The translations under genes were made by a program, and so were the position numbers. Below are positions 2,006 through 64,000 of a DNA stretch of 64,000 bases, piece by piece. This stretch comes from Auanema rhodensis (Eukaryota; Animalia; Nematoda). The notes beneath the pieces are model-generated. The model saw only the letters and a list, made by a program, of their open reading frames with translations, ran no database searches and was not told where the DNA came from. The first letter of the stretch is position 1. The number at the start of each line of letters is the position of its first letter. The DNA is taken from NCBI GenBank assembly GCA_964057225.1, contig OZ059898.1:13640001-13704000 (forward strand), read 5' to 3'.

Positions 2006-3274
2006 CTACAATTGTTCTGTTTGTTCGAAAAGAATTGGAGTTATCTGGCCACAATATGTTGGATTGTTTGGAACGTATGCTTCGGATGCATAAGTTGGAT
2101 AGGTAGCTGTAGGATAGTATGGTGGGAAATAATTATTATAAAAGTTATAATTAGCTGTTGGAGGCAGTGTGTATGATGGCCAACCTGAAACAATCAAAAT
2201 AAATAATGAACAACATATTAAGGTTTTGAATCAAGTTTGTAAACTAATGCTTACCGGCTGCTGCTCCTTGGCTGGAATCGGTGTACTTAACAGATGATAA
2301 TGGCTCAGGGTCGATAAGTTCTTTTTTTGGTTTGATGGCCATGCTCAGATACTTGGATTCCGTGTGAGCATCGAATTCAGCTGTTCCAGGCATAGGAATT
2401 ATGGGCATAGAGAGAGGCTTGATATCAAGAACTTTAGGTTCAGGTGGTGGAGATTCAGTATCAGTATTGCCAGATTTGGAAGAGTTATTGGATTGTAATG
2501 CCTTCTTAGCCAATCGTTCTTTAGCACGGCGATTTTTAAACCAAACCTGAAGTGAAAAACTTGTTGATAAACGTATTAAAAACGAATATTTTTTTTGATT
2601 TGTAGATAATTCTTTCAAATACAATTTGACGAAACAAAAATGTTTAAAAATATAGTACAGTACCTGAACTCTAGGTTCTAATAGTCCAATAGCTCGAGCA
2701 ATTTCTTCTCTTTTACCCAAATCGGGGTATTGGCTAATTTTGAATTGATATTCCAATTGTTGAAGCTGAAGGTTATTGAATGAAGTACGTTCACGGCGAG
2801 TACTTGTTCGACGACTGACATCTCGTCCACATCTTGCAGCACGATAACTGAAACAAAAAATGAAAATTAGAAGATTTGTATGATTAATCCGAAAATTTTT
2901 ATGTTGATATGTTGGTTGTTTGTTGTTGTTTATTTGTTGTAAAGCTTTAATGTATATAACATAATCCAATTTTGAGGCTGTACGATAATCTCGAAAACTT
3001 ATGTAATCCGGTAAGGTCGGATATAAACGATATACAAATGATCTTATGAATTTAGATTAATGATTTGTTGTTTCTCGAGTTGTTGTTTGAAATAATTTGT
3101 TAAAAAACTGTACCCGTTAGGCTGAGCTGATGCAGCTCCGTTCATTAGAACTTGTGGATGAGGAGGCAGATTATTGAAAAAAGCAGGATAATGTAACGGT
3201 TGGAAGGAAGCAAATCCTGGATAGGCAGCTGGGAAAGAAGAAGCCGAAGCAGTAGAAGCTGGAGGAGGTCCCAT
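2006..3274 (-). CDS. ceh-36: Otx-like paired-class K50 homeobox protein, CEH-36-like (~271 aa)
   Basis: Exons 3274-3114, 2847-2664, 2546-2255 and 2184-2006 splice in frame with GT-AG ends (816 nt). Homeodomain [56 protein letters not shown] has K50. It resembles C. elegans CEH-36 (RRERTSFN...QYPD..REA.A.AI.L..RVQ) and lies in tandem with a ceh-37-like gene. A TTCAG acceptor sits 16 nt before the ATG. Confidence 0.85.
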
Positions 3275-10159: not shown

Positions 10160-11653
10160 TTAGAGAGATGTATTGGTTCCGGCAAAGAAATATGGATTTG
10201 AGGCATTGTACTGAGCTTGGGAGTAAGCTGGATAAGAGTATCCGGTGGCATATGCTGAATCAAACATTGTCGGGCAATATGGGTTAGCATAGATTGGATA
10301 GGTGTTGTAGACAGTTGGACTACTAATATTTACAGCTAATGGTGCTGATGAAGCTGCCGAGCTGACTGATGATGTTGCTGAGCTGGATGAGACGCTCTGA
10401 AACAAGTTATTCGTTCAATCATCTTTCTATAATATGTGAAGCTTACCGTTGATGATTCATTACTCCAACTGTTATCCCGAACACTGACTCCAGGAGAATC
10501 AGTCTTTGACAATGGTGAGAGAGAATTTTTTGGTGGTGTACTGTAACTTGAATCGATAAAGATGATTATAGATCAAAAGTGTTATTACCCAGATTCTGGT
10601 TCACTTGTTATCTGGTTGTATCCATTTGAAGGTGGTTCTTCTTTCACTTTAGTTGCAGTTGAATCAGCTAAAATTTTAAGAAATCATGACAAGTTGACAA
10701 GAACATTTCAATAATTTTCTACAACAAATTTCAAAAAACAAAAAGAAAGAATTGTTATTCAACAAACCTTCTGCTTCATTTTTGTCAGCTTTTGGCTTTT
10801 GTCGTTCCTGTTGTCTATGCTTAGCACGTCTGTTTTTGAACCAAACCTTAAAAGAGGAAATGAAATATATTAAACAAAACAATAATATGTACCTGAATTC
10901 GACCTTCTTGAAGATGAATTTCTTCAGCTACTTTTTCTCTTGTGAATACATCAGGATAATGAGTTCTAGCAAATAGATTTTCCAAAACTTCAAGTTGTTG
11001 TCTATTGAAAGTTGTACGTTCACGACGATTTTTTCGTGGAATCATGCCTGAAAATGAAATGCATTTTCTACAAATCCCTTCAATCCATATTCTTTTATTT
11101 TCATTTTTGAAAAACAAAATATTTTATCTGCTCAGCTAGGTCAATATTTCTTTTATCATCTTATCATCTTAGAAATCCGACCTTGCCAATCAAACGACAG
11201 ACCTTCCAGCCTGCTCAGGTATTTCATGCTGACTTCTCATGTCATTTGAGGTTTTTTTAGTTTTAAATTCAAAACAATTTGACAACTGATTATCGTATCT
11301 TCTCTTTTTTCTCTTTTAACAGAAGAATATTTTGAATTAGTAATGAGAATGATACCGACGTTGACACATACATATGTATGCAAGCATGTTATACCTCATC
11401 ATCATCTCATTTCAACATCAATACATACACTTATTCTTCTTCTGAATATTCAGATTTTTTGATTTGAAAATCAAAGAATAGCATCATATATCATTCAAGA
11501 TAGTTATGTTGTTCAACAACAATATGTAAATGCTCAATAGCTGGCTGTGTTGAAGTTGTCGTCGTCGATCGGCTTATCCTTCCGTGGACCAGCCGATGAT
11601 ATGAGCGTACACTTATGAAAAGAGATGCAAAAAAAAGAAAGAGTGAAAGATAG

Positions 11654-27425: not shown

Positions 27426-30057
27426 TTATCCTGTATCTGTTAAATATTTTAAAAAGTTATGTGCATTTTGATAATCAACTAAATCTTCTTTCTGATTTAC
27501 TTGTGCAAGTTCACTTAAAATTTCCAAGAAATTATCTGAACGTATTGAAGTATTTTGAGGCTGAAATAGATAAGTTTTAAATTTTTTTTGTTATAATATG
27601 GAAACCTCTCGAATTTGTTTTCGTTTAAATGACCACATCTTATAATCAGGTATGAATGATATTGGAGATGATGTTGTTACTGTTAACTTCAATGGATATA
27701 TAGGTCTTAATGTAACTTCTGATGATGAAAGATTGATGAAATTATCTTCTGTTGTACGAGGCATTTCTAAATTAATTACAATAAGATTGTTATACAACTT
27801 AATTTGTAGTTCACCTGTTGTTGTTGTTGTTGTTCGACGAGTTATAACTCGTGGCATTGGGGTTACACGATAGCTTCTTGTGGACGATAAAGGAGTTGTA
27901 GTTGTAGTCGTGGTTGTTGTTGAGGTAGTTGTCGGTCTGGTAGTTGTGGGGGTTGAGGTTGTTGTTCGTATTCTTGGTGGCATAGTAACGATTACAGCAT
28001 TACGTGGTGAAGATGTGGTAGTTCGATATTCTCCTCTCTTTGATTCTGCTGTCAAGATGGCAAGCTTCCGTCTCAAAGCTGCTTTTCCTCGGTTTTTTCG
28101 GAAATTTCTGCGTTCTGGAGAATTCATGGCTCCAACTAAAAAAGGGGATTGCAACAATAATGATAAGATAATGGTACCAGCATTCAATGGTGTGTCAATG
28201 GAACTGTACTCCTGAGTTTCGGTTGAGTTTCCTTTTTCAAGTTCAGTTCGATGTCTTTTCAACATATTCTGAAGTAAAATGAGATCAAATATAAACTTTA
28301 AAAATTTTTTAACTGGATATCTAATACAGCAAGTGAACGGCGAACATTGAGTATAAGCTCCAGAACAATGACATGGTAATACGTTACATCGGATAGTTGC
28401 TGGTGGAACAATCAGACAATCCACATGACATGAAGGCATACTGAAATTCAAAAAAGAATATCAATAAGTTTTTTCTAAATTGAAAACCAATCAGGACGGC
28501 AGAATGGTCGGTGAGATTGTATTTCCTGCATAGGGAATGGAGCAAATTGGACATGTGAAGTACACTGAGGAAGACATTGGGGTTGACAAGATGGAGCGCA
28601 TTGAGCTGTAGGGTTTGGATGTATCACAACAACAAACGGCTGATTTGGTGTAGGAGATCCTTTAATTTAAAAAATATTTTAATAACTTTTGAAAACAAAT
28701 GAGAGAAGTCATTCAACCATAAAATCCAAACATAGTTACCTGGTAAAGTTGTAGCATGAACTGCGGAATTCTGACAACATTGATGACCACACCATCCCAT
28801 TTGGCAATGTGGAAACGGATCCTGTAATCAAAATTTTAAAGTAATACCATAAGGAACTAAAAGTTGTAACCTCATATTCACTGTACATGCTCATTCCTCT
28901 CATTCCGAATCGTTGCTTCTTCCGTACAAGATCGTTTAATTCTGTTTTCTTTTGCTTCTCTTCGATCATGTCATCGCTAATGATCTGTCGGTTCCGGCTT
29001 ATTGACGTTCGCTGACGTTCTGACGGGATCACCGCAGATGTTGTGCGACTATTGCTTGTAGTACTGCTAGTGCCACCGTTGACAATATTCTCGGGGAGAG
29101 CAAGATGTCGTTGAAAGCTTCCGGCTGTTTGCGGTGATGATGTTACAGGTGACGTCATTGGCGGCGTCTTTAGAGTAATACGAGGATACGGATCAAGCAA
29201 GGGAATAGGAGCATGAGCACGATGAGGTGCCGTATCTAATGGTTTTTGAATGAATGTTGATGCAGGTTGAATGAAAGTTTGATTTCCTTTAACTACAGGA
29301 TATAATGGTTGAATAATGGGTAATTGAATATTTTGTGGTTCAATTCGAACAAAATGTTGAAACTTTCGAATTGGAATAACTATAAAACAAGATTATAACT
29401 AGAATAAAATAAAAATTCTGATGTTACCATTAGGTTCTTGTTTGTTTAAGATTATAGTATTAGGATTTACTTTGTTATTATTACTCCATCTTAATTGATT
29501 ATACTCTTCCAGACTAATGGATCGTGGTTCAGATTTAAAATTCTAAATATATTAAATTATTTATAATAAAATAAAGGATTTAAAATTAATTAGCATATGA
29601 TTAAGAGCCAACTAATTCAAGTGTATATTCGGATTCACGTGAATGAGCTCACGTCAAAATTCTCATTTTTTTTTAACGTTAGCATAGTACTGGTGGTTGC
29701 ATTTAGAACTTTATATTTTTTATTTTTTGAATAATAAATTTCAAATTTTAGAAAAAAGAGGAATCTGGAAATGAGAAAGCAAAAAGAAACTTACGTTGGA
29801 TGGTTTCAGTTCTGAATTACCAATTGACCATGCTGCATATCTTTGAGCTATATCCAATAGATTAGCTTCCTAAAATGATGACATAATCAAAAAATATTAA
29901 TATTCAATAAAGAAAAAACTCAATTTTTTTCTTTTAATCCATATACAGTAATTTCAATTTAATTATAATATTTCTTTTTATCGCTTACCTCTTGTGAAAA
30001 AGCTTTTGAAGATAATATAATAGTTAAGAGAAAAATAATAATGTAAGTTGAAGACAT
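27426..30057 (-). CDS. Secreted protein with nematode Cys-rich repeats (CxxxCxPxCxxxC) and Thr-rich mucin-like tracts
   Basis: Signal-peptide exon MSSTYIIIFLLTIILSSKAFSQE (30057-29989). Later exons give CQMGWCGHQCC, CAPSCQPQCLPQC, CRPDCMPSCHVDC, CNVLPCHCSGAYTQCSPFTCC and a poly-Thr tract at ~27890-27965. The last exon ends ...LTDTG* at 27426. Some internal exon boundaries are approximate. Confidence 0.8.
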
Positions 30058-30484: not shown

Positions 30485-31468
30485 TTAGAGTCCCATTTGA
30501 CTTAATTGTGATAAGATGGACTGGTGAACATCACGTCTCATACGGAAGGATAGACGGCAGCTAAGAACCATTGGAGAACATCTAAAGAACTTTAATTAAC
30601 AAAAAAATTTCGATATTTATGATTTAACCTTGGTGGTGGTGGACCACAGTTTGGACATTCAACTAATGGAGCAGAGCATCTGCAGGGAACTGGACGGGGA
30701 GCTTGACACATGCATGGTGGTGGAGGTGGTGGTGGAAGTTCTCCCTAAAAATGTTGAAATGCTATTCTGAAATCTCTTGTAGCTGCTAAGTACCTGACAA
30801 CAGGGGTTTGCGGGTGTAGGTGCAGCAGCACAACAAGAAGATGGTTGTGGTAGTGGTGGTGGTTGAACCAAAGCTTGACAACATGGATTAGCTGGAGCTG
30901 GAGCTGCCTTGCAGCATGAGACAGTTGGAGAAATAGCAAGCTGAAAAGAATAACTAGTAAGCTTGCAACCACTCATTTTATTCTGATTTTGATAAAATTT
31001 TGAAAAGTTTAGGATAATCGTTTGAGAATATTTGCCTTTGTTCCGTTGATTATTACAAATTCACTAATAGGTGAAAGAATGATTGGAACTGGGACCAGAA
31101 TGGTCTGGAAGACGCTCTCTCTGATACCCGTTTTTACTACTAGAAATGAATTACCTGACAACATCCAGGGTTGGGTCGAGGAGCATTGCAGCATGATTCT
31201 TGCATTGGTGGGGGTGGTGGTGGAAGTGGAGCATTATTACAGCAAACAGGACATTGAGCACACAATGGAGGTGAGCTGCAACCACCTTGACCACAAAATC
31301 GCTTGACACGAGATACTGCTGTACTCTGTAATTAGCCGTATTAGTATATGAAATACATAAAAATAAAGAATAACAAGTAGTATATAGCATATTACTTACC
31401 GAAGATGGAGTTGGCTGAGTACTGAGGAAAAGCACAGAGCATGCAACAACAACAGATGAATATCTCAT
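30485..31468 (-). CDS. Secreted Cys/Pro-rich precursor (199 aa), putative cuticle or apical-matrix protein
   Basis: Exons 31468-31400, 31325-31155, 30940-30794, 30744-30629 and 30581-30485 total 600 nt in frame. It has a signal peptide, an RVKR site, a core with 26 Cys and poly-Pro runs, and an RMRR site near the C-terminus. Confidence 0.88.
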
Positions 31469-31544: not shown

Positions 31545-32140
31545 CCCTGAACCGGTGTTTTTCTGCTCCTTGACATAGCTGTCAAAGGTCAGTACAGACA
31601 GACAATGAAACAGTCTGGGTAAAGCATAAAACTGGATTTTCATTTATCATTTAATTTCGGAACTTTCAAAACCGTTTCTGGATTATATAAGATTTGAAAG
31701 ATCATAGAAAACAAGTCTACGTCAATCAACAAAAGGTTGAATTTTTTCTAAAAAATTCTTCAAATCAAAAGAAAAAAGTTTTTATTTTTAGTTTAAGAAC
31801 ATTTAGATTGTGAATAAATTCGATTTTCTTCTTTATTTTCTTCAATTTATATTTCAACTGAAGATTCTATCCGATAATTGTGAATAATTTGTTTATTTTT
31901 AGAAATATTCTATACTCTTATTGTTTTCATATTTTTGTTTATTAATTTACATTTGTTACGCTAACATCAATCACGTGAATTTAGAATATTATTTTGATTT
32001 TGAAAAGACGTGAAAGCGGTTGTATACTGTTAACTATACAAACTATTTTTTTAATTATTCTAATTATAATGAGATGAAAGAGGGTTAGAAATCTTTATTC
32101 ATATAGATGTTACAAGATGAATATCATTGATTCTTCTATC

Positions 32141-32491
32141 TTACCAACCGTTGGCATCCCAGCACTTCATGGTCTTGTTGAATTCTTTGACAGTCATACA
32201 ACACCTAGAATGAAATCAAGTTGGAACTTGAAGTCAAAACTTGAAGCCTTACATGTAGTAGTTGTTGTTACAGTTGTGCATCTGAATATCAAGACATCTC
32301 TTATAACACTTGTCAGCACACCAGGTTTCTCTCCAGCTGAAAAGCTCAAAGTAAGGTTAGAAACTTAGAAGACACAACGTTTGGGGGATGGAAGCTTCAC
32401 AGTTGGATCCAGCAAGAGTTCCGTGACAGTAGTCAACGCAGGAAGCATAAGCAGCAGCAATGCAGACAGCAAGAACAATGAGGAGTTTCAT
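32141..32491 (-). CDS. Secreted 10-Cys peptide, copy A (86 aa; M>W variant)
   Basis: Reverse complement of copy B with the same three-exon structure. ATG at 32491, TAA at 32141-32143. Encodes RETWCADK rather than RETMCADK. Confidence 0.88.
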
Positions 32492-32594
32492 TCTGAAAGT
32501 TTGAGTTTCAAGTTGGAAAGTTGAAAAGTTGGAAGCTGAAAAGGAGAAAGATATGCAGGATGATGATGATGATCTGATGTTTAACTGTTAACTG

Positions 32595-32847
32595 CTTATA
32601 TACATGATTGTAATTTTAATAAAAAATTTAATATATATTATACTATATAGAATAAAATAAAAGTTTTATAATTTGGTTATAAAACTTTATTTTAAACTTT
32701 GATATCAAAAAGAATTTTATACAAACTTGTATCACTAAGTAGGCGTTAAAGAGCTCCCACTGTTTACAAGCCAGCATGAGATCTATTGAAAAACAAATTT
32801 CTTTTTTCTATTAAAAGTTCAAAAAAGATTAAAATTATGTATTTAAG
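32595..32847. promoter_or_regulatory. Shared bidirectional promoter of peptide copies A and B (repeated at ~38744-38996 for C and D)
   Basis: Outward-facing TATA-like boxes GTATATAAG (minus, 32595-32603) and GTATTTAAG (plus, 32839-32847). Forkhead-type TGTTTAC at 32761-32767. Confidence 0.65.
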
Positions 32848-32943
32848 CAGTTAAACATCAGATCATCATCATTATCCAGCATATCCTTCACTTTTCCAGC
32901 TTCCAACTTTCCAACCTTCTAACTTGAAACTCAAACTTTCAGA

Positions 32944-33295
32944 ATGAAACTCCTCATCGTTCTTGCTGTCTGCATTGCTGCTGCCTATGCTTCCTGCGTT
33001 GACTACTGTCACGGAACTCTTGCTGGATCCAACTGTGAAGCTTCCATCCCCCAAACGTTGTGTCTTCCCGAATTTCTAACCTTACTTTGAGCTTTTCAGC
33101 TGGAGAGAAACCATGTGTGCTGACAAGTGTTATAAGAGATGTCTTGATATTCAGATGCACAACTGTAACAACAACTACTACATGTAAGGCTTCAAGTTTT
33201 GAATTCAAGTTCCAACTTGATTTCATTCTAGGTGTTGTATGACTGTCAAAGAATTCAACAAGACCATGAAGTGCTGGGATGCCAACGGTTGGTAA
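32944..33295 (+). CDS. Secreted 10-Cys peptide, copy B (86 aa)
   Basis: Exons 32944-33056, 33100-33183 and 33232-33295 (261 nt; introns of 43 and 48 nt, GT-AG). Protein: MKLLIVLAVCIAAAYA-SCVDYCHGTLAGSNCEASIPQTWRETMCADKCYKRCLDIQMHNCNNNYYMCCMTVKEFNKTMKCWDANGW*. AATAAA at 33337-33342. Confidence 0.9.
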
Positions 33296-33525
33296 GAAAG
33301 AAGAATCAATGATATTCATCTTGTAACATCTATATGAATAAAGATTTCTAACCTTCTTTCATTTCATTATAATTAGAATAATTAAGAAAATAGTTTGTAT
33401 AGTTAACAGTATACAACCGCTTTCACGTCTCTTCAAAATCAAAATAAGATGTACCAAATTAATTTAAAGAAATAATTTAAAAGTTTATTTTATTAAAAAA
33501 AAAAGAAAAAGTTTTTTTGAATATA

Positions 33526-34815
33526 TTATTTGATATCAATTATAGTGGTTGGTCTTGCTTGTCGCTTATAAAGTTTAATTCTTAAAAATTGTATAACGCA
33601 TTTTCTATATGATGGTACGGTATATAATGTTAAAACTGATCCACATATAAAATAAATTATTAAACATGAAATAAGAAAATTTTGAATTTCTGCAGAAAAA
33701 AAAGGAAAATAATTGATATAAACAAAACGTTTTTACCTTTTACATTGTAACATAAATATGATAAAAGAAGAAATATAAAAGATATTATGGTAGCAATTAT
33801 GAGAGCAAGAGCCTTAATATAAATAATATTTTATAATAAACAAATATATTTCAAAAAAAAAAACAAATAAAAAATAATAAAAACCTGAATGAAATTTATT
33901 TTTATGAGCATTTTATGTGAAGTTAAAGTTTGTTGAGACATGCTGCTCTTGATATTATTAAATCTATTCCATGTAAGAGCCCCTAATGTACAAATTTCAA
34001 TCAAAAATAAAGTTAAATTTATCATAGTTAGCACAATATTGCTAATAATATATGAACCTGACTTTGTTAATGATATAATTAAAGTTTTTTCTTGTAAAAT
34101 ATCTTTTGGATCACCAGGATATATCTGGAAATTGATTAGGTTCAGTTTCACATAATGAAAACTATATGGTATAGTATAGTATGTCAAACCTTTAAACAAT
34201 CATTCTTTACTTCTTCAATATTTTCAATTTTTGTTATAAGAACAAGAATATTCGGAATTAGTGAATATCTAAGAAACGTCTCCATCTTTATTATATATTT
34301 AAGTGTTTTGTGCATTTTTATTTGTACAGCTTGATAACGAAAATGAAACATTAAGATTGTAATTCCACCGTAATCTTAAGAATATTTGATTATTTTTAAA
34401 AATAAAAAATTATAAAAGATACTTACAATAAAGTAATAAAACAATTACTAAAGTTAATGTAAGTGTTGAAACTCCAGAATATTTTAAAAGTCCCATTGGA
34501 TATCCTCCTAAACAAGGAGCTACAAACATAGGCATTGCTCCACATGACACAATAAATGAGAATAGTAGTCCACTTGAAAATATATTTGTTAAAAGAATTT
34601 TTTAAAATTTTAAAAACTATAAGTTCCATATGGAAGCACTTTCGTAATTCTCTCCAAATTAATATTAAAACTTACAAGAAACATTGTAAAAATAAACAAT
34701 TTCTATATTCGTTATCCATATTTGAAGGAGAATGGTATAAAACACAAAATGAAGCAATACATAAACATATAAATGATGTTGGAATACAAGTATAACATGC
34801 TATTTCGTAAATCAT
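33526..34815 (-). CDS. Serpentine 7TM chemoreceptor, Str superfamily (srd/srh/sri-like)
   Basis: N-terminus MIYEIACYTCIPTSFICLCIASFCVLYHSPSNMDNEYRNCLFLQ (SP..M..YR motif), multiple TM exons, loop MSQQTLTSHKMLIKINFIQ, and TM7 GSVLTLYTVPSYRK. Stop TAA at 33526-33528. Internal exons were not all frame-checked. Confidence 0.82.
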
Positions 34816-37711: not shown

Positions 37712-38289
37712 TGAATATAATAAAATATTTTTTATGTAACGAATGTCTATTAGTTTCTTTATTAAGTATTTTCAAAGATTTAAAGAAGAAATACAAGCAC
37801 AATCTATAAAAAGCTTTTCTAACGTAAAACAATATTTGTTTTTCTATGTGTGTTTCATGTCGCTTTCATGTATGGCTACAACATTTCATGTTAACTATAT
37901 TATAATTCGTTTTTGAAACTAAAAAAGAAACTTAAAAGGTATTTTCTAATCAGATGCATAATCTGTACTGGATCTTTGCCAATTTTCCTATGTATACATA
38001 TATATACATATCTTTTTCCCGATTTTAGAAAATATTACTTGTAAGAAATATTTTGCAGGTAATATATTCAAAAAAACTTTTTCTTTTTTTTTTAATAAAA
38101 TAAACTTTTAAATTATTTCTTTAAATTAATTAGAATATCATTTTAATTTTGAAAAGACGTGAAAGCGGTTGTATACTGTTAACTATACAAACTATTTTCT
38201 TAATTATTCTAATTATAATGAAATGAAAGAAGGTTAGAAATCTTTATTCATATAGATGTTACAAGATGAATATCATTGATTCTTCTTTC

Positions 38290-38640
38290 TTACCAACCGT
38301 TGGCATCCCAGCACTTCATGGTCTTGTTGAATTCTTTGACAGTCATACAACACCTAGAATGAAATCAAGTTGGAACTTGAATTCAAAACTTGAAGCCTTA
38401 CATGTAGTAGTTGTTGTTACAGTTGTGCATCTGAATATCAAGACATCTCTTATAACACTTGTCAGCACACATGGTTTCTCTCCAGCTGAAAAGCTCAAAG
38501 TAAGGTTAGCAACTTAGAAGATACAACGTTTGAGGGATGGAAGCTTCACAGTTGGATCCAGCAAGAGTTCCGTGACAGTAGTCAACGCAGGAAGCATAGG
38601 CAGCAGCAATGCAGACAGCAAGAACAATGAGGAGTTTCAT
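38290..38640 (-). CDS. Secreted 10-Cys peptide, copy C (86 aa)
   Basis: Same three-exon structure. ATG at 38640, TAA at 38290-38292. Coding differences from B are synonymous. Confidence 0.88.
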
Positions 38641-39092
38641 TCTGAAAGTTTTAATTTCAAGTTGGAAAGTTGAAAAGTTGGAAGCTGAAAAGGAGAAGGT
38701 TATGATGGATGTTGATGATGATCTGATGTTTAACTGTTAACTGCTTATATACATGATTGTAATTTTAATAAAAATTTTAATATATATTATACTATATAGA
38801 ATAAAATAAAAGTTTTATAATTTGGTTATAAAACTTTATTTTAAACTTTGATATCAAAAAGAATTTTATACAAACTTGTATCACTAAGTAGGCGTTAAAG
38901 AGCTCCCACTGTTTACAAGCCAGCATGAGATCTATTGAAAAACAAATTTCTTTTTTCTATTAAAAGTTCAAAAAAGATTAAAATTATGTATTTAAGCAGT
39001 TAAACATCAGATCATCATCATCATCCTGCATATCCTTCACCTTTTCAGCTTCCAACTTTTCAACTTTCCAACTTGAAATTAAAACTTTCAGA

Positions 39093-39443
39093 ATGAAACT
39101 CCTCATTGTTCTTGCTGTCTGCATTGCTGCTGCCTATGCTTCCTGCGTTGACTACTGTCACGGAACTCTTGCTGGATCCAACTGTGAAGCTTCCATCCCC
39201 CAAACGTTGTATCTTCTGAGTTTCTAACCTTACTTTGAGCTTTTCAGCTGGAGAGAAACCATGTGTGCTGACAAGTGTTATAAGAGATGTCTTGATATTC
39301 AGATGCACAACTGTAACAACAACTACTACATGTAAGGCTTCAAGTTTTGACTTCAAGTTCCAACTTGATTTCATTCTAGGTGTTGTATGACTGTCAAAGA
39401 ATTCAACAAGACCATGAAGTGCTGGGATGCCAACGGTTGGTAA
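39093..39443 (+). CDS. Secreted 10-Cys peptide, copy D (86 aa)
   Basis: Same three-exon structure. ATG at 39093, TAA at 39441-39443, followed by AATAAA. Confidence 0.88.
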
Positions 39444-40347
39444 GAAAGAAGAATCAATGATATTCATCTTGTAACATCTATATGAATAAAGATTTCTAAC
39501 CTTCTTTCATTTCATTATAATTAGAATAATTAAGAAAATAGTTTGTATAGTTAACAGTATACAACCAGTCATTTATATTGAATAAAACTTTTTATATTTA
39601 TCATCTATTTAACTTTATTTTTCTTTAATATACTTTTATATTTCTCTGTTACAACCCTACAGTAGTAGGCAGTCTTTACAACATTGTTTGAGTTTGGGCC
39701 TCTATATGTATTTGCAGTAGCAGTGACCTAGGTTATAACCGGCTTAACGTATGATTATATGAACAGTGAGGCTTTAATCTTAAAAAGTAAAGCTAGATCT
39801 CTAAGGACAAACATAAAATATGAATTTATTTATTTATTATCAAGAATATAATGTTATATCAGATTATTCAATGTATTATACTAAGAAATATACATAGATG
39901 ATAATGTGATTTCTATAAAATCCCTTTATCTTCTTAGATTCAAGGATATAAATAAAAATTAAAATTAAGATTCTACTTCGTGTCAAGATATTTGAATCTG
40001 GCGCCATATTGATGGATAGTAGTTGACATCGTTATTGAAATGATTGTTGTGATTAGCATACGAATAGAAAGGTAACATAAGGACAAAAGAGTTATAAAGA
40101 AAGAAATTTAGAAAAGTGATGGATAACATTCGTTCAAATGAATATTGATGTTAACGGTATCAACATTTGAATTGTTGTATTGTTAGATATTATTGTTTTC
40201 AATGAGTGATGTTCTGTATTCGATGAATCTAGTGAGCTATCATGGGAAAAGTTTAGATAACTCATGTTCTTCTTTCATGAGATATACATACCTATATGCC
40301 TGAAGTGTGAGGACTTATGGGAATATGGTACTCTTATGTTGATAAAT

Positions 40348-46400: not shown

Positions 46401-48261
46401 ACTTCTTTTCTAATACCTTTTTTCAATTTCAAATGATTATTTTAATCATCAGATGACCTGATCGTTTGTTATTTCATATCCTTCTTCTTATAACATTCTC
46501 TTTCTTTCAACACACTTCCACTCCAACCTTCACAACCAAATCAAATAAAAATTTTTGTGCGAAAATGGCCGAATTCTGATTTGATACCTCATCTGCTCGT
46601 TAAAAAGATTCGTTTATCTTAACTGCAATCTACCGTTTTATTCACAAAATCTAATCCAGGCCAGTTTTCTAAACTTCTTCACACCTGTTGATCCATAAGA
46701 TGACTGTTAGGGAGATGTTACTCTAACCTCCTTTCCTTCTTCATCCTCTTAGTTCAGTGCCGAACAGCAGGAGGCGTGGCTTGAAGAGGATCATCAGAGG
46801 GGAGGAGGGTGTTGGCTGAACGGAGAAGAAGAAGAAGAAGAAAGAGGCAAAAGAAGGACCCTAGGCTGTGTTGATGTGCTGGTGAGGCCATCCCTCGAGT
46901 ACCGCCCTCCTCATCCATCGCTACTGATCTGATGAGGATGACGAAGGCGACAACAGCATGATCATCATGATTTGCGCAATCCGCCAACTTAAGACTCAAG
47001 ACGGAGCTATATGTCTGAATAATTTTAAATACTTTATGAATATTATAACAATTTCTCTGAGTATGAAACAGGAAAATTGTTCTACCTTCTTTAAAAATAT
47101 TTTTATTTCATTTTATTCATTTTTTTTTCATTTCAATTTTACATTCTTTCCAACGTTTTCCACTTAATTCTTCTACTTTTCTTCTAATTTTCGGTTGTTC
47201 TTATCGTCAATCCGCCATCTCTCTTAAGCTAAATTTCGTTTTTAGCAAATGCACTGATGCCGTGTTGTGATATCATGACAGACAAAAAATTCGTTTTTCA
47301 AAACAGTATTAATCGATCTTCTTCTTCTTCATCTTCTTTATCGGTCGGCTTACTTCTGTTATCTTTTGAATATTCGAGTAGAAAAAAAGTTTGAAAACGA
47401 TTAGGTTTGTTAGTAGCTGACCTTATACAGTTCATGATCAGCATACTTATTCGTTTCAGCATTCTGAGAGCATTTTTATGTTTTTTTTCACATATGTTTC
47501 TGAACTGTACTCTCAATTTCTCTTTAATTTCTCATCAAATTCTTTATTCACTCCAATAACTCGTTGACTTCTTTCTCTATTTAGAGGATAATGAGCTAAC
47601 GGTTGACTGACGCCAGCAAGTCGTCGTCATCGTTCAGACGGCCCATAGGCAGGAGTCAACGCACACATTGCTCTCTCCTAGAAACATCTCTAACATTCTC
47701 TCACTCTCTCTTATTATATGTTCTTTTTGATTTGTCTGTGTCACAGTCCTCTATATCTTCTTCTTCTTGCTTTTTACCGCTATGTGTGTTATGAAGGTCG
47801 TCTATTATCTAGATATTTGTTCCTTATTCTGATGTTCTAAACCATTGTTCTGCCAACCTTTCACCTACTCCCTTCTACCTTCTCATCATTTTGAATACAA
47901 AATGGATTAGAAATCCAAAACAACATATCCAATCTCTTTTCCTTTTCCATTTATATTTACGTGAACGTGAAGTAATTTTGTCATTCTTGCATACGATTCC
48001 TCCAATTTTTCGTTTTTCAATTTCCTTTGTTTCTTCTTTAGAATTACTTTCTTCATCAAAAAAATTTCACCTTTTCTTCACCACCTTCTGGAACACAGTT
48101 TTTCAATCAAAATACACAGGAAATCTTTTTTTGCCTGTTCTTACTCAGTACATGTTGCAACTCAAATCTCTGACTCATCTAACATATCTCTCCCAATTTC
48201 ATTTCGAAGAACTTTTCTATTTATAGTCATACGTATATACACATGTTGTTATATCCAAAAG

Positions 48262-48265
<4 letters not shown>

Positions 48266-48299
<34 letters not shown>
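48266..48299. repeat. (GA)n microsatellite
   Basis: About 17 AG units. Confidence 0.9.
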
Positions 48300-48308
<9 letters not shown>

Positions 48309-51540: not shown

Positions 51541-54500
51541 ATGTCAATCTATATTTTCGTCATTCAACTCCTGCTGAGTTCTGTGTCTTCTCTAGAACTA
51601 CGTAAGTTTCTATTCTTTTATTTCTTCTTTGAAAAGTATTTATCACATGTATATCTCATCCAAATCTATTCTTTTTTCTTCTTCTTCTGATAATTTGATT
51701 AAGAAATAGTGATAAGACGAAGAACTTATGAATTATTATCGCTCAAATGAACACATGTTCTTAATTGTTTCCTTAACTATACATATATAGTTAGATAGAA
51801 TTCTTAGGCTAAAGAAAGAAAAAGCAATATCATTTACATTTTTTTTTGTTTTCCGATCGTTATGTGTGTAAATGAATCAGAAGTATATTCACGGTTTATT
51901 AGCATATATAAGCTGTTAAATGGATAGATTACTAGCTATCCTTCGGGAGATATTCTTTCATTTTTGCCGACACACATAGCTACTTCAAGTCTTTCAACAA
52001 ACAATGCCCTCAGGGCTTCTGAAGTGTGAAGTGAGAGTAATGATCTGATATAGAGAAACATTCACATATTCTTTTTTCCATTTTTGTCTAAAAGGAGCCT
52101 AGATTTTTTTCTATCGAAAAATATAACATAATTCTTCAGTCGGGAGAACAGACGATGAGTATCAACAGATGCACGCAGTGAATACGCAAGTGCTCTCACC
52201 ATTGCGTGTGACCTCGAAAACAGCTCGATTTTCTCTCATCTGACAGTGATGCTTCTATATTCTCGCTTTTGGAACGCTAGTTCCATAAGGTGTGAAGAAC
52301 ACATGCTACCTGTTTATCTATTTCTGTCACAAAGTTCGCACTCATCTCTCAAACTTGCAAAAGCTTTTAAGCTGTCAGTTCTAACAGCAGGAAGATGATA
52401 TGTGAAAACGGAAGCCAACTGTTCCGGACACGGTCAAAGACTAGCCGCCTGAAGTCTTTCCGGGGTCGAAGCGCCTTGTGAGTCAATCGTTTTCTCTACT
52501 TCATCTATCTTCAACTCCTGTGCTCATTAAAAAAATTGAGAGAGTAGCTGTATTCAGAGAGGAATGAAGAGAGATAGAGAGAAAAAACAGGATGAAGGTG
52601 ACAGGAAGAGGAGATGCAACAGTCTAAGAGTAATACAGTCGAATTTTTGTCTCCACACTTCCGTCGTCATCCATCATATATCTGTCACTAGGCAATATTA
52701 CAAAATTTATTTTGAAGATAGATAAAGCTCTTTGGAATAAAGCACTTCAAACAGTCGGCCGATTATTATCATAAAGCTGTCTATAGCACTTAGACGTCAT
52801 CCTTGTTGCCGTCGTTCTGACCAGCTTTTTAGAACCGGGGATTTCATTTTTTGTTTTAATGAAAGATCAACAAATTAAAAAGGAAAACGAAGCGTTGTTG
52901 ATGACCATATGATCTTATGAATTCTTAAAGTCTTAAAGTCGATATTAATGAGATGATGTTGAGGATGTTGATGAATAGCAATAAGTAAATCTCTATCAGA
53001 ATCTGGATTTACAGAGTGAGTAAGGTGAATGACCTCAGCTATTTATCTTTCAATCATCATAACTACTAACTTATCTATGTCAGTCTAAAAAGTTGTCAAA
53101 ATAATTTATTTGTTTGTTTACCTCACTCACTCATTCATCAACAATTCTTATCTCAGACGGAAAAAAAGTTATTTATGATTATAGATATGTAAAACTACTT
53201 TTACACTAAATATTTAAATAAGAATGTTGTAAATCAAAACAGAGATGTTAAGGTGTGAACTGTTTATAGTAGAATATACATATAGTATAGATGTATTCAA
53301 AGAAAACAGAAAGAGAGAGAAAGAGAAAGAGAGAGAGAGAGAGAGAGAGGTACTGTTTCAAATATGATTTACAACCTTAGAAAAAACATTCTCATCTTCC
53401 TTAAGAAGGCGAAGAAAGGGAACGTCTGGCCTAAAATACTGTTTTTTTATGTTTATTGGTACTTGCTGTCATGTTGTTTTGATTGTTCTAAACCAAAGAC
53501 GGCACAGTGATTCAACATCGCGATTGTGGTCATAGTAACTCAATTTCACATAATACTCATATACGATATGAGGTTTTTGTCTGGAAAAATTGGAGAAGAG
53601 TAAGATAGAGTTACATATGATCAGTCATCACATCAACAAGCAACTATAGTTAGCTAGCTATATCGTTTAGTAAATGAACTCTGATCTTCATGATAGTAAG
53701 TGAACAAGTTTCTTGGATTTGGCCTCTTCTATGTCTTACTGTACATTTCTTAGATATGTTTGTAGAAGCCATATTTGGGTTTGTTCATCAACTTCTTCTT
53801 CAATCTGACTTACATCTAAGAGTTCCTAGTCTCTTAAGTAAATACCAAAACACAGAAGTCGGCAACATTCTTAAGACAAATGTGTGATTTTTGGCACAAA
53901 AATCTTAAGATTCTTATCATATCTCACTTATATCCTTATATGCCATTCAAGGAGTATATTTACTAGATTATAATGACGTAACATATAGCTAATCGTCGGT
54001 GTATATCAAAGGCAATTATTATTATTTCTATCCGGAAATTGTGGATTAGCATATAAACTACTGTGTGTGTGTGTGTGTGTGCTCCTTTTCCAAGCTCATA
54101 GCCTATCAACTGTTTCTAACAGGGGTTTACTGCTCCTTGTGAAAAAGAGCAGGTTGAGTCTCAGATTCGGTTGACTGCAAGAGATGCGTATGTTCATCTC
54201 TTGGACCTAATTCCTTCATTCGGTCAACCAAACAATAGAAGTCATGCGAAAATCAAATAGAACATCTAGCTAACTACCGTGGGTGAGCAAATGAAGATGA
54301 ACCATCCACATCCTCATCATGACAATCATCATCATCTTTTTTCATCTTCGACACCATTATTCGTTATGAGACCATGAGGGCTTTTAAGACAAAATATTCA
54401 TTTTTCCAATGAAAATTTATTTCAATTCTTATGTTCTTTAGTCCACAGAAATTTATTTGAGTTGCTCAGAAATGAATTTTAATTGAAAAAGCTTGTGAGT

Positions 54501-57500: not shown

Positions 57501-60500
57501 ACAACCTGAGTGAAGTGAAGTTCAGATGATGATGATGATGAGTTGTCATAAGAAATGCAGAACAAATGTTCTTTCTATTCATTTCGATGTGAGTGGGAAG
57601 AAAAAATAATTTTCTTTTTTTTTGTTTTGTGAAGGGAATCAAGAGAAGAGAAGAGAAAAAGAGAGAGAAAGAGGGAGAGAGTGAAAGAGAAATGATACAA
57701 TATAGGAGAACAAGATGTTTCTTCTGATTTATATTGAGTTTCTTGAATTTTCAATTAAATCCAACAGCAAGACAGATGTACGAATGCATATGTGGTTAAG
57801 CTATTTTCTTCTATTTTCTTTGAAAAGAAGGAAAAATTACAACCAGTTACCAACAGATGAGGAACAAGTAGTTTACAGTCCTGTTACTGTCTCAGTTATG
57901 AGCAGCTGGGGACGGCAGAAACCTTATACGGATAAAGAAACCATCGGCTACTTTGTGGATTAAACGAAAGGTCATTTTCACGATAATTCTTGTCACAGGT
58001 CACGCAATTAAAGGGAAATGAAACAGTATAGAAAAGTCTTTTAAGGTAGCAATGATGAGGGATAGTTAATACCGATCCCAGCTTATGCATAACATTCTCA
58101 AATAAAATATAATTAGCATAATTAACTAAAATAATCATCGTCACCTGTTCATTTCTGAATACGAGCATGGTGCGAAAAAAAAGAGAATCATTTTTTCCCA
58201 GATCTTTTGATGTTTTCAAAAGAGAGACATTTGAACAGCTTTAATACGCCTTTCTTTCAAGATTTTCTAAAGTCCTTGACCAGGCGCTAAATGCACTTAT
58301 CATACATGCATCGTCTGCTTCTGGGTGCTTTTTAATTCTTTCTGTCGTCAAACAACAAAGAAAAATGTTGATTGTCATCAATCATGCTATAAGATTGAGA
58401 GGGCTTGGAGTTAAAGAACATAGCAGACCCTTAAGTAGTACTGAATATCAATTCTGTAATTCTCTCTTTCTCTCTCTCTCTTTCTCTTACTCTCATTCTC
58501 TCTTGTCCTCTCATAAGGACTGTATTCTGTTGTCAGCTGTGTATTTGAAGGATTGAGAGATTGAGAAGGAAGGGAAACAGAAAGAGCAAGAAAGATAGAA
58601 AAGGAAATGGCACTTTTTATGTTGACGTCATCTGGTCATCATGTCTTGTTCTCGTCCTCCAGAATTCATAATCACGTTTTAAGCGAGAGAAGTACAAGAT
58701 AGAGAGGGAGAGAAAAGGATGTGGTTTGACCATTACAATGCTAAAATCATTGATTTTGAACAGAATTGTGACATGAGAAGACACAACAGACATCAGGCTT
58801 CTGTCTCATCAGGCCAACTAGTTCATAGTCCTTATCTATTCAGAGAATTTTTGAAGGGCATCATGAGCGATATGAGTAGACAAGAATGAATATCATACCA
58901 GATGTTATACATGCATATATACAGTTCATCATCATTATGATTTGTGAAGAAAACATTGTGAACAATGAGATTTTCATGACATGATACGTCAATCTTCTGT
59001 CAATTTGCCAGATTACGTGAGAATTTTGATGGCAATTTCTATTCCAAACTATGATTGTTTTGAGGGAAACTGTGAAGAGTTATATGAACCTATTATTCAA
59101 ACTTCAAATAAAATAGTTGAAGATTAGAAGAACCTATATGACAGAAGCTCTTTTGACGGCTTCTGTCTTCTAATAATGAGCAGAAAATCCGTTGATTACA
59201 GTTGCCGTTCTTCGGTTGCTTTCTAGCATTGAGATCAAAGCCACGGGTCACTAAACATCTTAATCCCGTTATGGTTCAGCGTTTTACCTTTCAATTGCCA
59301 AAAATCTCAGAAATCTCATTCATTACCATCTGATCTAAAGGTTAAGACAGAAAATACGTCAGAAGCGGATTAACTTTTCTTCTAAAAGACTTCATGATCG
59401 TGAGGATAATGTTACGATTTGTCAGATGACGCAATAAATGATCTGAGCAATACCATACTAAGGATTATAAGACGTCAAACAGAGCATATCGTTCAATAAA
59501 TTTATTATTTTTATAAAAAAGAAAGATAATAAATCTTATAAATGAATAAAATATATTTTTTTATAGTAAATAAATCAAAATAATTTCAGATTATTCCTGG
59601 AAATACTGACACTCTCACAGGAGTATTAAGAGTATTGAATGGAACTATTATTGCTCGTAAAATTCGAATAATTCCCATTTCAAATACTACAAGAACTGTT
59701 TGTCTTAAATTTGAGATTTATGGATGCCCATATAGAGGTAAATTTTTTCTTTTTAAATGTTCAGAAAAAAAAGGTGAAATGCAACCGATAACACGAAGAA
59801 AAATATGTAAAAATGCGAATTATGAATTAATTTTACGTGAATGACGTGAAAATAATAATTATATATCTTAATATGCTAATTTTCAATTTCAGATATTGTT
59901 GAATCGTATTCCATTCCAATAGGATCATTTTCTGATGGATTACTCCTATTAGATAATACTTATGATGGAAAATTTGAAAATAAAATGCAAAAAGGTGGAA
60001 TTGGCAAGCTATTTGATGGTATGATTGGTCATGATGATTTTGAACATCATCCACAAAAATGGGTTGGATGGCACAAAGAACCAGAAACAGGTAAGATTAT
60101 AAAACAAAAATAGTTTTTTCTGAGTCATCTAATACAATTCTTTTCAGAATTTATTCCATTATTCTTTACTTTTACTTCTCGTCAAAATATTTCGTCAATT
60201 CTTATTCATACAAGCAATCAGTTTAATCAATTGGCACCAGCTTTTGCCTCAGCTTCTATCTCATTTTCACTTGACGGAAACAATTTTTCCCGAAGAACAG
60301 TTCATTTTCAATATAAGAAAGATATGAAATTTGAAAATTCACGTTGGATTCGTATACCAATTCCTGATCGTATTGCTAAAGCTGTTGAGGTTCGCATGAT
60401 TCTTTTCTAATTTTATTAATTATATATTGTATTCAGGTTAAATTATATTTCCAAGAACAAGCTACATGGCTTCTTATTTCTGAAGTCAAATTCGAAACAA

Positions 60501-62138
60501 ACAGAATTATTTTTGAAATTTCTGATGAAGGATCTCATGAAGATTTCGTTTTACATCACGTAACTGAGAGTGAGCCAACTGATCCTATGAGTATTCATGC
60601 ATATCGTAAGAAATTCATATAGTTAACGTTGATTTATTCAAAATATTTCAGTTCTTTCTTTGGCTATTTTCTCTTTTGTTATTGTTTCTTGTGTCATTTT
60701 CCTGATGAAGCGACGTGATAGAAGAGTTAAAGCATCATCTCCAGCACCAACCTTATATAATCGACGAAAATTAGAAACTTTGATTAACTATAACGGAACA
60801 AGAGTAAGCTTTATCTCAAGTTTAGACTTTTTAATTTCAAAAATCTTTTAGACTATGACAACAACTGTCTCAGGATATGAAATGACAAGAGAAAGTATGC
60901 CTACTTTATTAGAAAAATATCCAATTCTTGAATCACTTGAATCAGAATATGCGGAACCTGAAATGATGTAAGAACCTGTAAAACTTTAAAAAGTTACCAA
61001 AATATTCTGTTTCAGTTGTGGAAATATATATAATCCTTTATTATCTTCATTCTATACAACTGATGATACATTACCTATGGATTTTAAGAAATCGTAAGTT
61101 TTATTTCATAAAATTTGTGGTAAAATGAAAATATTACAGTAATCCTCTATCTTCATTGGTTAAATATTCTGATTATGGAGAAGTTTATACTACTACTCTT
61201 CCTGAAATTGATAGAAATAAGCTGGAGTTTGTGGATAAAGTTGGACAAGGAGAGTTTGGAGAAGTTCATCTCTGCCGTCTGGAGAACCGCCTTGTTGCTG
61301 TCAAACGGCTTCACAGTACCACCGAAGAGGATGAGATGGCTTTCCAAAGGGAGATTCGTGTTCTTGGAGCTCTGAAGCATGCTAACGTTGTTGAAGTTAT
61401 TGCTGTTTCTACTATTAACAAGCCTATTCTCTGCGTAATGGAATACATGACTAAGGGAGATTTAAAATCATATCTTTCAACACTTCCGGAAATAACATCT
61501 TCATACTGTATATCTGTGTGTACTCAACTTGCTGCTGGATTGGCTTATCTGGAATCATGTAACTTTGTCCACCGCGATGTTGCTGCTCGTAACTGTCTCG
61601 TTGATGACGATGGAAATGTAAAAATTGCTGATTTTGGAATGGCTCGATCATTATATTCATCTGAATATTATAAAGTTGGAGGTGGAAACTTTGTTTTACC
61701 AGTTCGTTGGATGTCTCCAGAAGCACTTTTCATGGTTTGTCTTGAGTACTTTTTATCCTGTTTAATGCTAATCATATCTTTAGGGTAAATTCTCATCAGC
61801 TTCTGATGTCTGGTCATTTGGAATTACGATGTGGGAAATATTTAATAAGTGCCAACTTCGTCCATTCAATCATCTTTCTGATGATAAAGTTGTTCCAAAC
61901 CTTCAAACAATTTGTAGTACAGGACGAATAGAGGTAATAATTTGCTTAAAATCTGATCTTTAAACTATTCTTCTCAAATTTTCAGAATTCACTTTCTTGC
62001 CCATCACTATGCCCTCAAATATTGTATCATCAGTTACTGCTAAGATGCTTACATCCATCTGCCACAGCTCGACCAAGTTTTGCTCTGATTCATCTGAATC
62101 TTCAATCATTTATCCATTCAAACAAAATCAATTTATAG
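51541..62138 (+). CDS. ddr-2: Discoidin domain receptor tyrosine kinase
   Basis: Exon 1 (51541-51601) encodes MSIYIFVIQLLLSSVSSLEL. Exon 2 (55961-56066) encodes GCNHPLGM...ITASSSFDEESTGPQHAR. The discoidin motifs GSGAWCP..QINS, ETEGRYDNGRGMEY and SNTTRTVCLKFEIYGC follow, then a TM segment at ~60652-60705. The kinase has VGQGEFGEV, VAVK, HRDVAARN, DFG, LYSSEYY and VRWMSPE. Stop TAG at 62136-62138. Matches recalled DDR-2 motifs (LELR.C..LGM, STGPQHAR). Confidence 0.92.
53312..53349. repeat. Imperfect (GA)n microsatellite in ddr-2 intron 1
   Basis: GA run with AAA interruptions. Confidence 0.85.
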
Positions 62139-62461: not shown

Positions 62462-64000
62462 TCAATCATGCTGTGTTGTATATGATCGAACAAGCTTAGA
62501 CACTTTTTTATTTGACGAATCCGAACTTCGTCTCTCATGAACGTCATGCTCAAGCTGAAAAATCCTTTTCTTAGCATCCGTACCAAATTGCTGAAATATG
62601 TTATAGAGAATACTATATGTATTATTAAATATTAGAAATACATTAATTCTTGCTTCTGTTTCTGTGAGGGAATTTTCAATTTTTTGAATAATCTTTTCTA
62701 ATTGAACAAGTTGAAAATCAATATCAGCTTCAAGATCAACTTCATCTTCTTCAACAACATTTTCATCCAAAAGATTATCTTTAGCTAATAATTCTTTTCC
62801 TGTAATATTAAAATAATTTTAAAATATTCAACGTTATGAACAAAACCTTTCAACATTAATGATTCCATAGCATCTGGATACTGTCGTAAAGATTCCCACA
62901 GGGCATTCTTTGATAGAACATATAAATCTGAATATCCAACAGAGCGTACATTAGCTGTACGTCTATTTCCATTCTTATTTCCTGGAATATTGAGGATTGA
63001 TAGTTCACCAAACACAGTTCCTTCAGCAAGTTGAACAAAGACCTGAATATATTGCGATTGAAACATTTATTTGAATATTTCTACCTTGAGACCATCTTCT
63101 GATACAACTTCTACTGATCCTTTATTAACTATATACATTTCAGTTCCAACTTCACCTTTGTTACAAATATAGTCTTTAGGACTGTATATTCGACGCTCCA
63201 AGCGTAGGATAAGTTCGTAGAGTAAGCTCAAATTACAATCCTGTAGGCAGAAATAAAATATTTAAAATGAATAATTGAAGATACACCTCAAATAACTTGA
63301 CTTTTCGAAGTGTTTCCATGTGAATATGAACAGCTAATTGACCATAAAGTCTTGGAGGTAAGAACTCAGCAATTTCCTGTTTGAGTGGATTGATTCATGA
63401 AAAGAAAAAGAAGAGATGGAAATTACAGATTCATCAACTTGAGCTCCACCATGAGTCCACATATACGAGAAATAATCTATAGCTTTTCGTTGTAAAATTG
63501 GATGAACTTTTCTATAAAATAATTATAGAAACACTTGAAATTATATAAATGAAGTACCTGTATACCATAAACCTTTTACATCCATCTAAATCTTCTTCAA
63601 ATTGTGATCTTTTCAAATTCATATTATAAACCATATTACCTTTATAAGTTTTCATTGAACAGAAATAATTAATAAGAATCATACCAATATCTCCGACAAT
63701 CACAGCAAATATAACCAAACCAAGTAATGTATCTCCGATTTCAAAAGCATTTTGAAATGTTGTATTAGGCCACGGCTTCAAACAGCTTTTTAATTCAAAA
63801 CTTTTATAAAGTCAAATCAAAAAACCTGTTCTCCAAGTGTGACAAGAGTCAAGGCTGACCAATAAAAACTTAAACCATATTGCTTAGTAAAGTTACTGAA
63901 CTCAACAGCTTTCATTCTAAAAATAAAATATTTCTTTTAAATATTGAAAAATCAAAAGAAAATTCATACTTTGTACCCCAATACGATACGGATTTGTTGA
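62462..64000 (-). CDS. che-6: Cyclic nucleotide-gated channel subunit, 3' part (pore, C-linker, CNBD); 5' end lies beyond the window
   Basis: Pore [19 protein letters not shown]6 [24 protein letters not shown]-linker HGGAQVDE and FLPPRLYG, and [37 protein letters not shown]. The CNG family is certain; the che-6 paralog assignment is from memory. Confidence 0.8.

Follow-up and report, generated by a model that had tools for sequence, protein, structure and literature searches.

A small, spliced three-exon gene is present in four intact, near-identical copies within the window, that is, the whole 64-kb stretch of DNA that was analysed. The copies are arranged as two head-to-head pairs. A 30-nt probe taken from the gene start finds four sites in the window (zero expected by chance), and no diverged fifth copy is found elsewhere in the 64 kb. 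The four copies are placed as follows:

32141-32491, minus strand: copy A; exons 32379-32491, 32253-32336 and 32141-32204; introns of 42 and 48 nt; carries the substitution M43W
32944-33295, plus strand: copy B, the gene first noted; exons 32944-33056, 33100-33183 and 33232-33295; introns of 43 and 48 nt
38290-38640, minus strand: copy C; exons 38528-38640, 38402-38485 and 38290-38353; introns of 42 and 48 nt
39093-39443, plus strand: copy D; exons 39093-39205, 39248-39331 and 39380-39443; introns of 42 and 48 nt

Copy B starts with the ATG at 32944 and closes with the stop codon TAA at 33293-33295. Both of its introns are of the GT..AG type: intron 1 (43 nt) ends with CTTTTCAG, and intron 2 (48 nt) takes the form GTAAGG..TCTAG. 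Under the same splice model the joined exons of each of the copies A to D give an 86-codon frame that is closed by a stop. The first-pass annotation had placed a three-exon gene in four intact copies opposite the antisense ORFs and had described frame, splice sites and all cysteines as kept in each, and both claims are confirmed by the joining of the exons. Its intron lengths of 43 and 48 nt hold in part, as the 48-nt intron occurs in all copies, whereas the 43-nt length applies to copy B and is replaced by 42 nt in A, C and D.

The donor of intron 1 is weak (GTTGTG or GTTGTA), and two alternative sites are in frame, namely a donor 3 nt downstream that adds one residue and an acceptor 6 nt downstream that removes two. 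Because of these alternatives, the spacing between the third and the fourth cysteine is uncertain by one or two residues, while all cysteines are retained whichever intron 1 site is used. Many other GT/AG combinations at the locus likewise give open frames, so that an open frame has no diagnostic value by itself. The adopted splice model is the one with the strongest sites and every cysteine kept.

The ORF list of the locus is dominated by the opposite strand. As had been remarked earlier, it reports antisense ORFs, and the sense strand enters it only with fragments. The entry that covers copy B is the following:

32954-33319, minus strand: antisense ORF of 121 aa, the longest unspliced ORF at the locus and the one in the ORF list

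This length is what speaks for the antisense ORF as the true gene of the locus. However, the length of the open frame is not conserved, as its stop-to-stop span is 96, 134, 96 and 148 codons in the four copies, and both its frame and its C-terminal part differ among the copies because a 1-nt intron indel shifts the frame. The antisense ORF has no Pfam match, and no relative of it was found. The sense coding sequence is free of TTA, CTA and TCA codons, which read as stops on the complementary strand, and for this reason antisense stops are absent from the codon-aligned frame over the exons. It is therefore extremely improbable that the antisense ORF is the true gene.

Signals for transcription and polyadenylation accompany the spliced gene on both sides, and each pair of copies has a common divergent promoter region between its two starts:

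32840-32847 (copy B) and 38989-38996 (copy D), both plus strand: TATA-like box, reads TATTTAAG
32595-32602 (copy A) and 38744-38751 (copy C), both minus strand: TATA-like box, reads TATATAAG
33337-33342 (copy B) and 39485-39490 (copy D), both plus strand, and 32094-32099 (copy A) and 38243-38248 (copy C), both minus strand: AATAAA, 41 nt past the stop
32492-32943, no strand: common divergent promoter region of the pair A/B, 452 nt, with two TATA-like boxes
38641-39092, no strand: common divergent promoter region of the pair C/D, with two TATA-like boxes

The TATA-like box, which lies about 100 nt upstream of the gene in each case, and the AATAAA that had been reported for the gene are both present at all four copies. 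The hexamer TTTCAG also precedes the ATG in all four; in copy B it occupies 32937-32942 and, followed by a single A, stands immediately 5′ of the ATG. The centre of the A/B promoter is mostly non-repeated, with 260 nt between arms of 220 nt. Weaker 46-nt arms (32588-32633 and 32809-32854, 78% complementary) continue the palindrome towards its middle, so that 175 nt are left. The same layout is seen in both pairs, where the weaker arms are 78-80% complementary. Copies A (32588-32602) and C (38737-38751) carry a 7-nt tandem duplication (CAGTTAA), placed between the TATA-like box and the conserved leader. The forkhead/FOXO core motif TGTTTAC is located once at the centre of each common promoter (32761-32767 and 38910-38916); it occurs 14 times in the whole window, which corresponds to about 0.1 expected per 452 nt, and is taken as a lead only. 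No TGATAA is found in the common promoters. A scan for bacterial promoters and terminators, which is not applicable to a eukaryote, stayed at the level of shuffled sequence.

In its layout the locus resembles the hsp-16 loci of C. elegans, in which divergent pairs of genes share a short common promoter and a whole pair has been duplicated near-identically. The products are unrelated, and the likeness is an analogy of locus architecture only.

Both pairs are embedded in large inverted repeats that include the flanks of the genes:

31981-33450, no strand: palindromic unit 1 with copies A and B and their flanks, arms 95-98% complementary
38130-39566, no strand: palindromic unit 2 with copies C and D and their flanks, arms 38167-38736 and 38997-39566, 98% complementary

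The segment 31981-33418 recurs as a direct repeat at 38130-39566 with 97.5% identity. Counted in pairs, the copies differ at 11 (C-D), 15 (A-D), 16 (B-D), 18 (A-C), 23 (B-C) and 25 (A-B) positions. A simple duplication of the unit is a poor fit to these numbers, because A-C and B-D should then be the closest pairs, but are not. The differences are out of step with the order of duplication and hence indicate gene conversion, and the comparison points to concerted evolution among the four copies. The 3′ borders of the repeat are staggered among the copies, a pattern suggestive of repeated duplication or conversion. Since the borders are staggered and form no defined ends, segmental duplication is favored over a mobile element, and a transposon was rejected as the source of the repeat. 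Beyond the common repeat, copies B and C share an additional 72 nt of inverted homology at 100% identity (33457-33528 and 38060-38131).

The presence of two palindromes with arms of about 600 nt, together with the many GT/AG combinations that are open at the locus, would also fit a palindromic repeat without coding function, or the remnant of a transposon, in which the spliced frame is open by chance. Such an origin is very unlikely. In addition to the staggered borders, the units contain no transposase-like ORF, and variation among the copies is lower inside the exons than outside them. Across the four copies, 5 of 261 columns are variable in the exons vs 28 of 297 in introns and flanks (Fisher p=1.2e-4; p=0.016 for exons against introns alone), a comparison that rests on few changes because the copies are 98% alike. 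Outside the exons, variable columns are most frequent in the 5′ flank (16/100) and intron 1 (6/43) and rarer in the 3′ flank (5/106) and intron 2 (1/48). The sole indel in the gene body is a single nucleotide and sits in intron 1. Four coding changes separate the copies. Three of them are synonymous, where 47.7 synonymous stand against 210.3 non-synonymous sites (p about 0.02, from the same small number of changes). The only amino acid change is M43W in copy A, in which two adjacent bases are altered; the earlier description of the coding changes as synonymous except for one M>W was thus accurate. Apart from coding constraint, gene conversion could likewise homogenise the copies.

A strong codon bias that is confined to one frame further argues against a frame that is open by chance. 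The GC3 of the gene is 0.54, whereas five other exon stretches nearby have values of 0.15-0.40, and the window as a whole has a G+C content of 31%. Asn is encoded by AAC in 7 of 7 cases, Leu by CTC or CTT only and Ser by TCC only, and the codons for Ala, Thr, Val, Leu and Ser never end with A or G in the gene. Codons of this set are the optimal codons of highly expressed genes in Caenorhabditis, and the same holds for rhabditids. As the bias matches this optimal-codon pattern, high expression of the gene is predicted. A high-dosage gene had been proposed at the outset, and the signs of high expression are found at the level of codon usage.

The product comprises 86 aa and is divided into a 16-aa leader and a 70-aa mature part, with 11 cysteines in total, 10 of which follow residue 16. 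The gaps between the mature cysteines are 3, 8, 12, 3, 3, 7, 6, 0 and 11 residues in all four copies, in agreement with the ten-cysteine framework and spacing that had been read from the gene. The leader has a mean Kyte-Doolittle hydropathy of 3.34 over residues 3-13 and is followed by Ala at both -3 and -1, with Ser at +1. By these rule-of-thumb measures it has the n-h-c organisation of a secretory leader with small residues at -3/-1, and the 16-aa signal peptide proposed before is supported as a signal-peptide-like N terminus with an Ala-x-Ala site. The mature part has a predicted mass of 8.2 kDa and a pI of 6.6; its 7 Lys and Arg residues balance 7 Asp and Glu residues to a net charge of about zero. 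It also holds one N-x-T sequon.

A crude propensity scan marks helix-favouring stretches at mature residues ~21-32 and 52-67. The C-x3-C-x3-C run encoded by exon 2 places cysteines at mature positions 28, 32 and 36 (i, i+4, i+8), and these three would share one face of any helix that spans them. From this arrangement we infer that the ten cysteines may form five disulfides and staple a helical core. It is highly probable that the locus holds a genuine gene family whose product is a secreted, cysteine-rich and disulfide-rich mini-protein made in large amounts. The fuller account, in which the four intact copies evolve in concert and are spliced and probably highly expressed, and which includes the mechanism proposed below, is as a whole somewhat more probable than its opposite.

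Searches for relatives were run exon by exon with queries of 37, 27 and 20 aa, each of which has little power. Exon 1 (32944-33054) was compared with 1.84 billion protein representatives and gave two matches of 28-29% identity to multi-stretch proteins. Both were judged spurious, and the one that was inspected (P0001) is a tandem-repeat protein. The detection limit for exon 1, as derived from the search scores, is ~33 bits, and comparison of the exon with itself gives 79 BLAST bits. Since ~33 of these 79 bits are needed, close or moderately diverged relatives are detectable and distant ones are not. A 55-aa open stretch at 32923-33087, which starts with 7 codons of 5′ leader and runs through exon 1 into 11 codons of the intron, had no relative among candidates of 30-96 aa in an index of 5.8 billion proteins that includes assembled sequencing runs. 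The same stretch identified no related locus in metagenome contigs or in contigs of prokaryote genomes. Nine residues of exon 2, written as a degenerate pattern of 27 nt, had no match in metagenome contigs. The searches of large protein collections and contigs thus cover exon 1 and the nine-residue motif of exon 2.

With the exons scanned apart, Pfam gave no match at E up to 1. Among PDB sequences, exons 1 and 2 have no match below E=5. Exon 3 retrieved WD-repeat and fucose-lectin proteins over 10-12 residues, which were rejected as an artefact of short motifs summed over repeats. No single stretch of these best matches passes alone, and the remaining ones score much lower (E 0.005-0.9). Rfam and tRNA scans of the window were negative, and literature searches with keywords and short peptide strings found nothing relevant. 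The claim that the peptide matches no known family therefore holds for exon-wise searches with queries of this size, and the unfamiliar cysteine framework is consistent with this exon-wise evidence, which falls short of proof.

The taxonomic position of the DNA can be read from a neighbour of the peptide genes, whose kinase exon lies about 17-29 kb away from them:

59584-61785, plus strand: DDR-type receptor tyrosine kinase; its exons encode F5/8 type C, DS-like and kinase domains

Its kinase exon shares 73-74% identity with Teladorsagia and Haemonchus, 68-72% with Dictyocaulus and 55% with Steinernema. Because the closest sequences are trichostrongylid fragments, the DNA is assigned to a clade V (rhabditid or strongylid-related) nematode; a human or viral source is excluded. 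The Srh-class chemoreceptor exon found between the two pairs also speaks for a nematode. Clade V includes the model Caenorhabditis as well as major parasites of livestock and humans. The peptide family appears to be confined to a narrow group within clade V, and no other species in the collections searched exon-wise lends the gene independent support.

Several known systems share part of the properties of the gene. The defence-peptide clusters of rhabditids, which comprise the ABF/CS-alpha-beta defensins, the caenopores/saposin-like proteins and the NLP/CNC peptides of C. elegans, are likewise built from short genes with tiny introns that encode a signal peptide and a small product, and they also form local groups of near-identical paralogues for which high expression is likely. 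They differ in that no similarity is seen at the level of the exons and in that the peptide described here is neutral and not cationic. The CS-alpha-beta signature pairs a C-x3-C on a helix with a C-x-C on a strand. No C-x-C occurs in the cysteine gaps of the peptide, and Pfam gave no match to this class by exon, so the peptide does not belong to the CS-alpha-beta proteins. Saposin-like proteins and caenopores have six cysteines where ten are found here, and the ShKT domain holds six cysteines in about 35-40 aa. Neither was matched in Pfam by the exon pieces of 20-37 aa. In the small Tim and CHCH proteins, twin C-x3-C (or C-x9-C) motifs in a helix-loop-helix staple antiparallel helices, and the C-x3-C motifs of the peptide could act similarly, which is an analogy of motif only. 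Tim10 (PDB 2bsk chain B) is the only PDB sequence retrieved by exon 2, at a non-significant E=5. In contrast to the peptide, small Tim proteins are made in the cytosol, reside in the mitochondrial intermembrane space and have four cysteines without a signal peptide, whereas a signal-peptide-like leader and ten cysteines are present here, so that the peptide does not belong to this class.

The TIL domain (PF01826) is similar in outline, with about 60-70 aa, ten cysteines, a C-x3-C-x3-C run, secretion and occurrence in nematodes. It has five disulfides, the number predicted for the peptide. The likeness of the C-x3-C-x3-C run to TIL serves as a lead only. Two differences can be seen in the framework: the peptide has an extra N-terminal C-x3-C, and it has CC at the place of the C-x-C that TIL domains carry. 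Moreover, TIL domains are β-rich, whereas the peptide is predicted to be helical by the crude propensity scan. The TIL profile gave no match at E up to 1 with the exons scanned apart, the 20-37 aa pieces being too short for the domain cut-off.

These comparisons bear on whether the gene, real as it probably is, is a member of some known cysteine-rich family, too diverged to be reached with exon-sized queries, such as a TIL-like ten-cysteine inhibitor or another nematode module. The small size of the three queries and the bit score that a relative of exon 1 must exceed leave room for such a family, and the resemblance to TIL, a lead only, points in the same direction. On the other hand, exon 2, which bears the shared motif, remains without a Pfam match, the PDB comparison gave nothing for exons 1 and 2 at the stated limit and artefacts for exon 3, and CC replaces the C-x-C expected of a TIL-like protein. 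A diverged known family is thus a possible but rather unlikely explanation, and it is one that overlaps with both functional readings of the peptide, as an effector and as a bulk protein.

For the secreted mini-protein encoded by the four copies, the following mechanism is proposed. TTTCAG would act as a trans-splice acceptor in front of the ATG. The leader would then direct the protein into the ER and be cleaved off after residue 16, and the ten cysteines would subsequently pair into five disulfides. The cysteines of the C-x3-C-x3-C in exon 2 would line one side of a helix, with staples to the C-x3-C at the N terminus and to cysteines further on, by which a compact and stable mini-protein could be generated. 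Four gene copies, two bidirectional promoters and optimal codons would together provide for high output. Tentatively, the peptide may be an effector that is abundant outside the cell and binds or inhibits a target there, in defence or in the interaction with microbes or a host. The neutral charge points to no specific activity; as the mature peptide has a pI of 6.6, a classical cationic, membrane-active antimicrobial peptide is less likely. Membrane lysis and hormone signalling are both less likely as its function, and both the number of copies and the codon usage disfavor a low-abundance hormone.

Codon bias, multiple copies and neutral charge would equally suit a bulk structural or reproductive protein of the eggshell, cuticle, pharyngeal lining, sperm or seminal fluid. 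The product is free of repeats and low-complexity stretches of the matrix-protein type, but nothing specific stands against such a role; a bulk protein is considered unlikely, though conceivable. The original interpretation, a high-dosage effector such as an antimicrobial, toxin or protein pheromone, is therefore retained in part: the spliced, secreted ten-cysteine gene in four copies with its expression signature stands, and the function, the five disulfides and the helical CxxxC staples are proposals.

The immune effectors, inhibitors and host-interaction molecules of nematodes have one of their main sources in small secreted disulfide-rich proteins. Nematode genomes commonly contain genes for small secreted cysteine-rich proteins that are lineage-restricted and locally amplified, so that the gene is of an already known kind. 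It is doubtful whether the peptide goes further and founds a new family of secreted five-disulfide mini-proteins, with a new framework and a helix stripe formed by C-x3-C-x3-C, amplified, highly expressed, narrow within clade V and missed by annotation. If the cysteine framework is new, it adds a stable mini-protein scaffold and a marker of some physiological state. If the peptide is a diverged member of a known family, the locus is an ordinary cluster of orphan-looking paralogues. A multi-copy gene with expression-type codons that has no relative in billions of proteins, as searched exon-wise, implies that much of this repertoire is lineage-specific.

The remaining neighbourhood of the peptide genes contains the following features:

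2247-3056 and 10679-11123, both minus strand: two homeobox genes on one strand, about 8 kb apart
27594-28460 and 28739-29392, both minus strand: mucin-like open frames rich in Thr runs, best Pfam E=0.23-0.38, not significant
30662-31060, minus strand: open frame adjoining copy A with repeated CC..P-rich..PCC motifs, best Pfam E=0.079, not significant
33834-34199, minus strand: Srh-class chemoreceptor exon (PF10318, E=8e-7), within the 4.7 kb of AT-rich DNA that separates the pairs A/B and C/D
62465-63811, minus strand: exons of a cyclic-nucleotide-gated channel with a cNMP-binding domain and a C-terminal leucine zipper, convergent with the DDR gene
527-780, 48227-48300, 53286-53350 and elsewhere, no strand: many (GA)n/(TC)n microsatellites

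The open frame at 30662-31060 may encode another secreted cysteine-rich product, as judged from its repeated motifs. In both homeodomains an intron follows position 46, and both contain the sequence WFKNRRAK with a Lys at position 50 (K50, Otx/Pitx-like).
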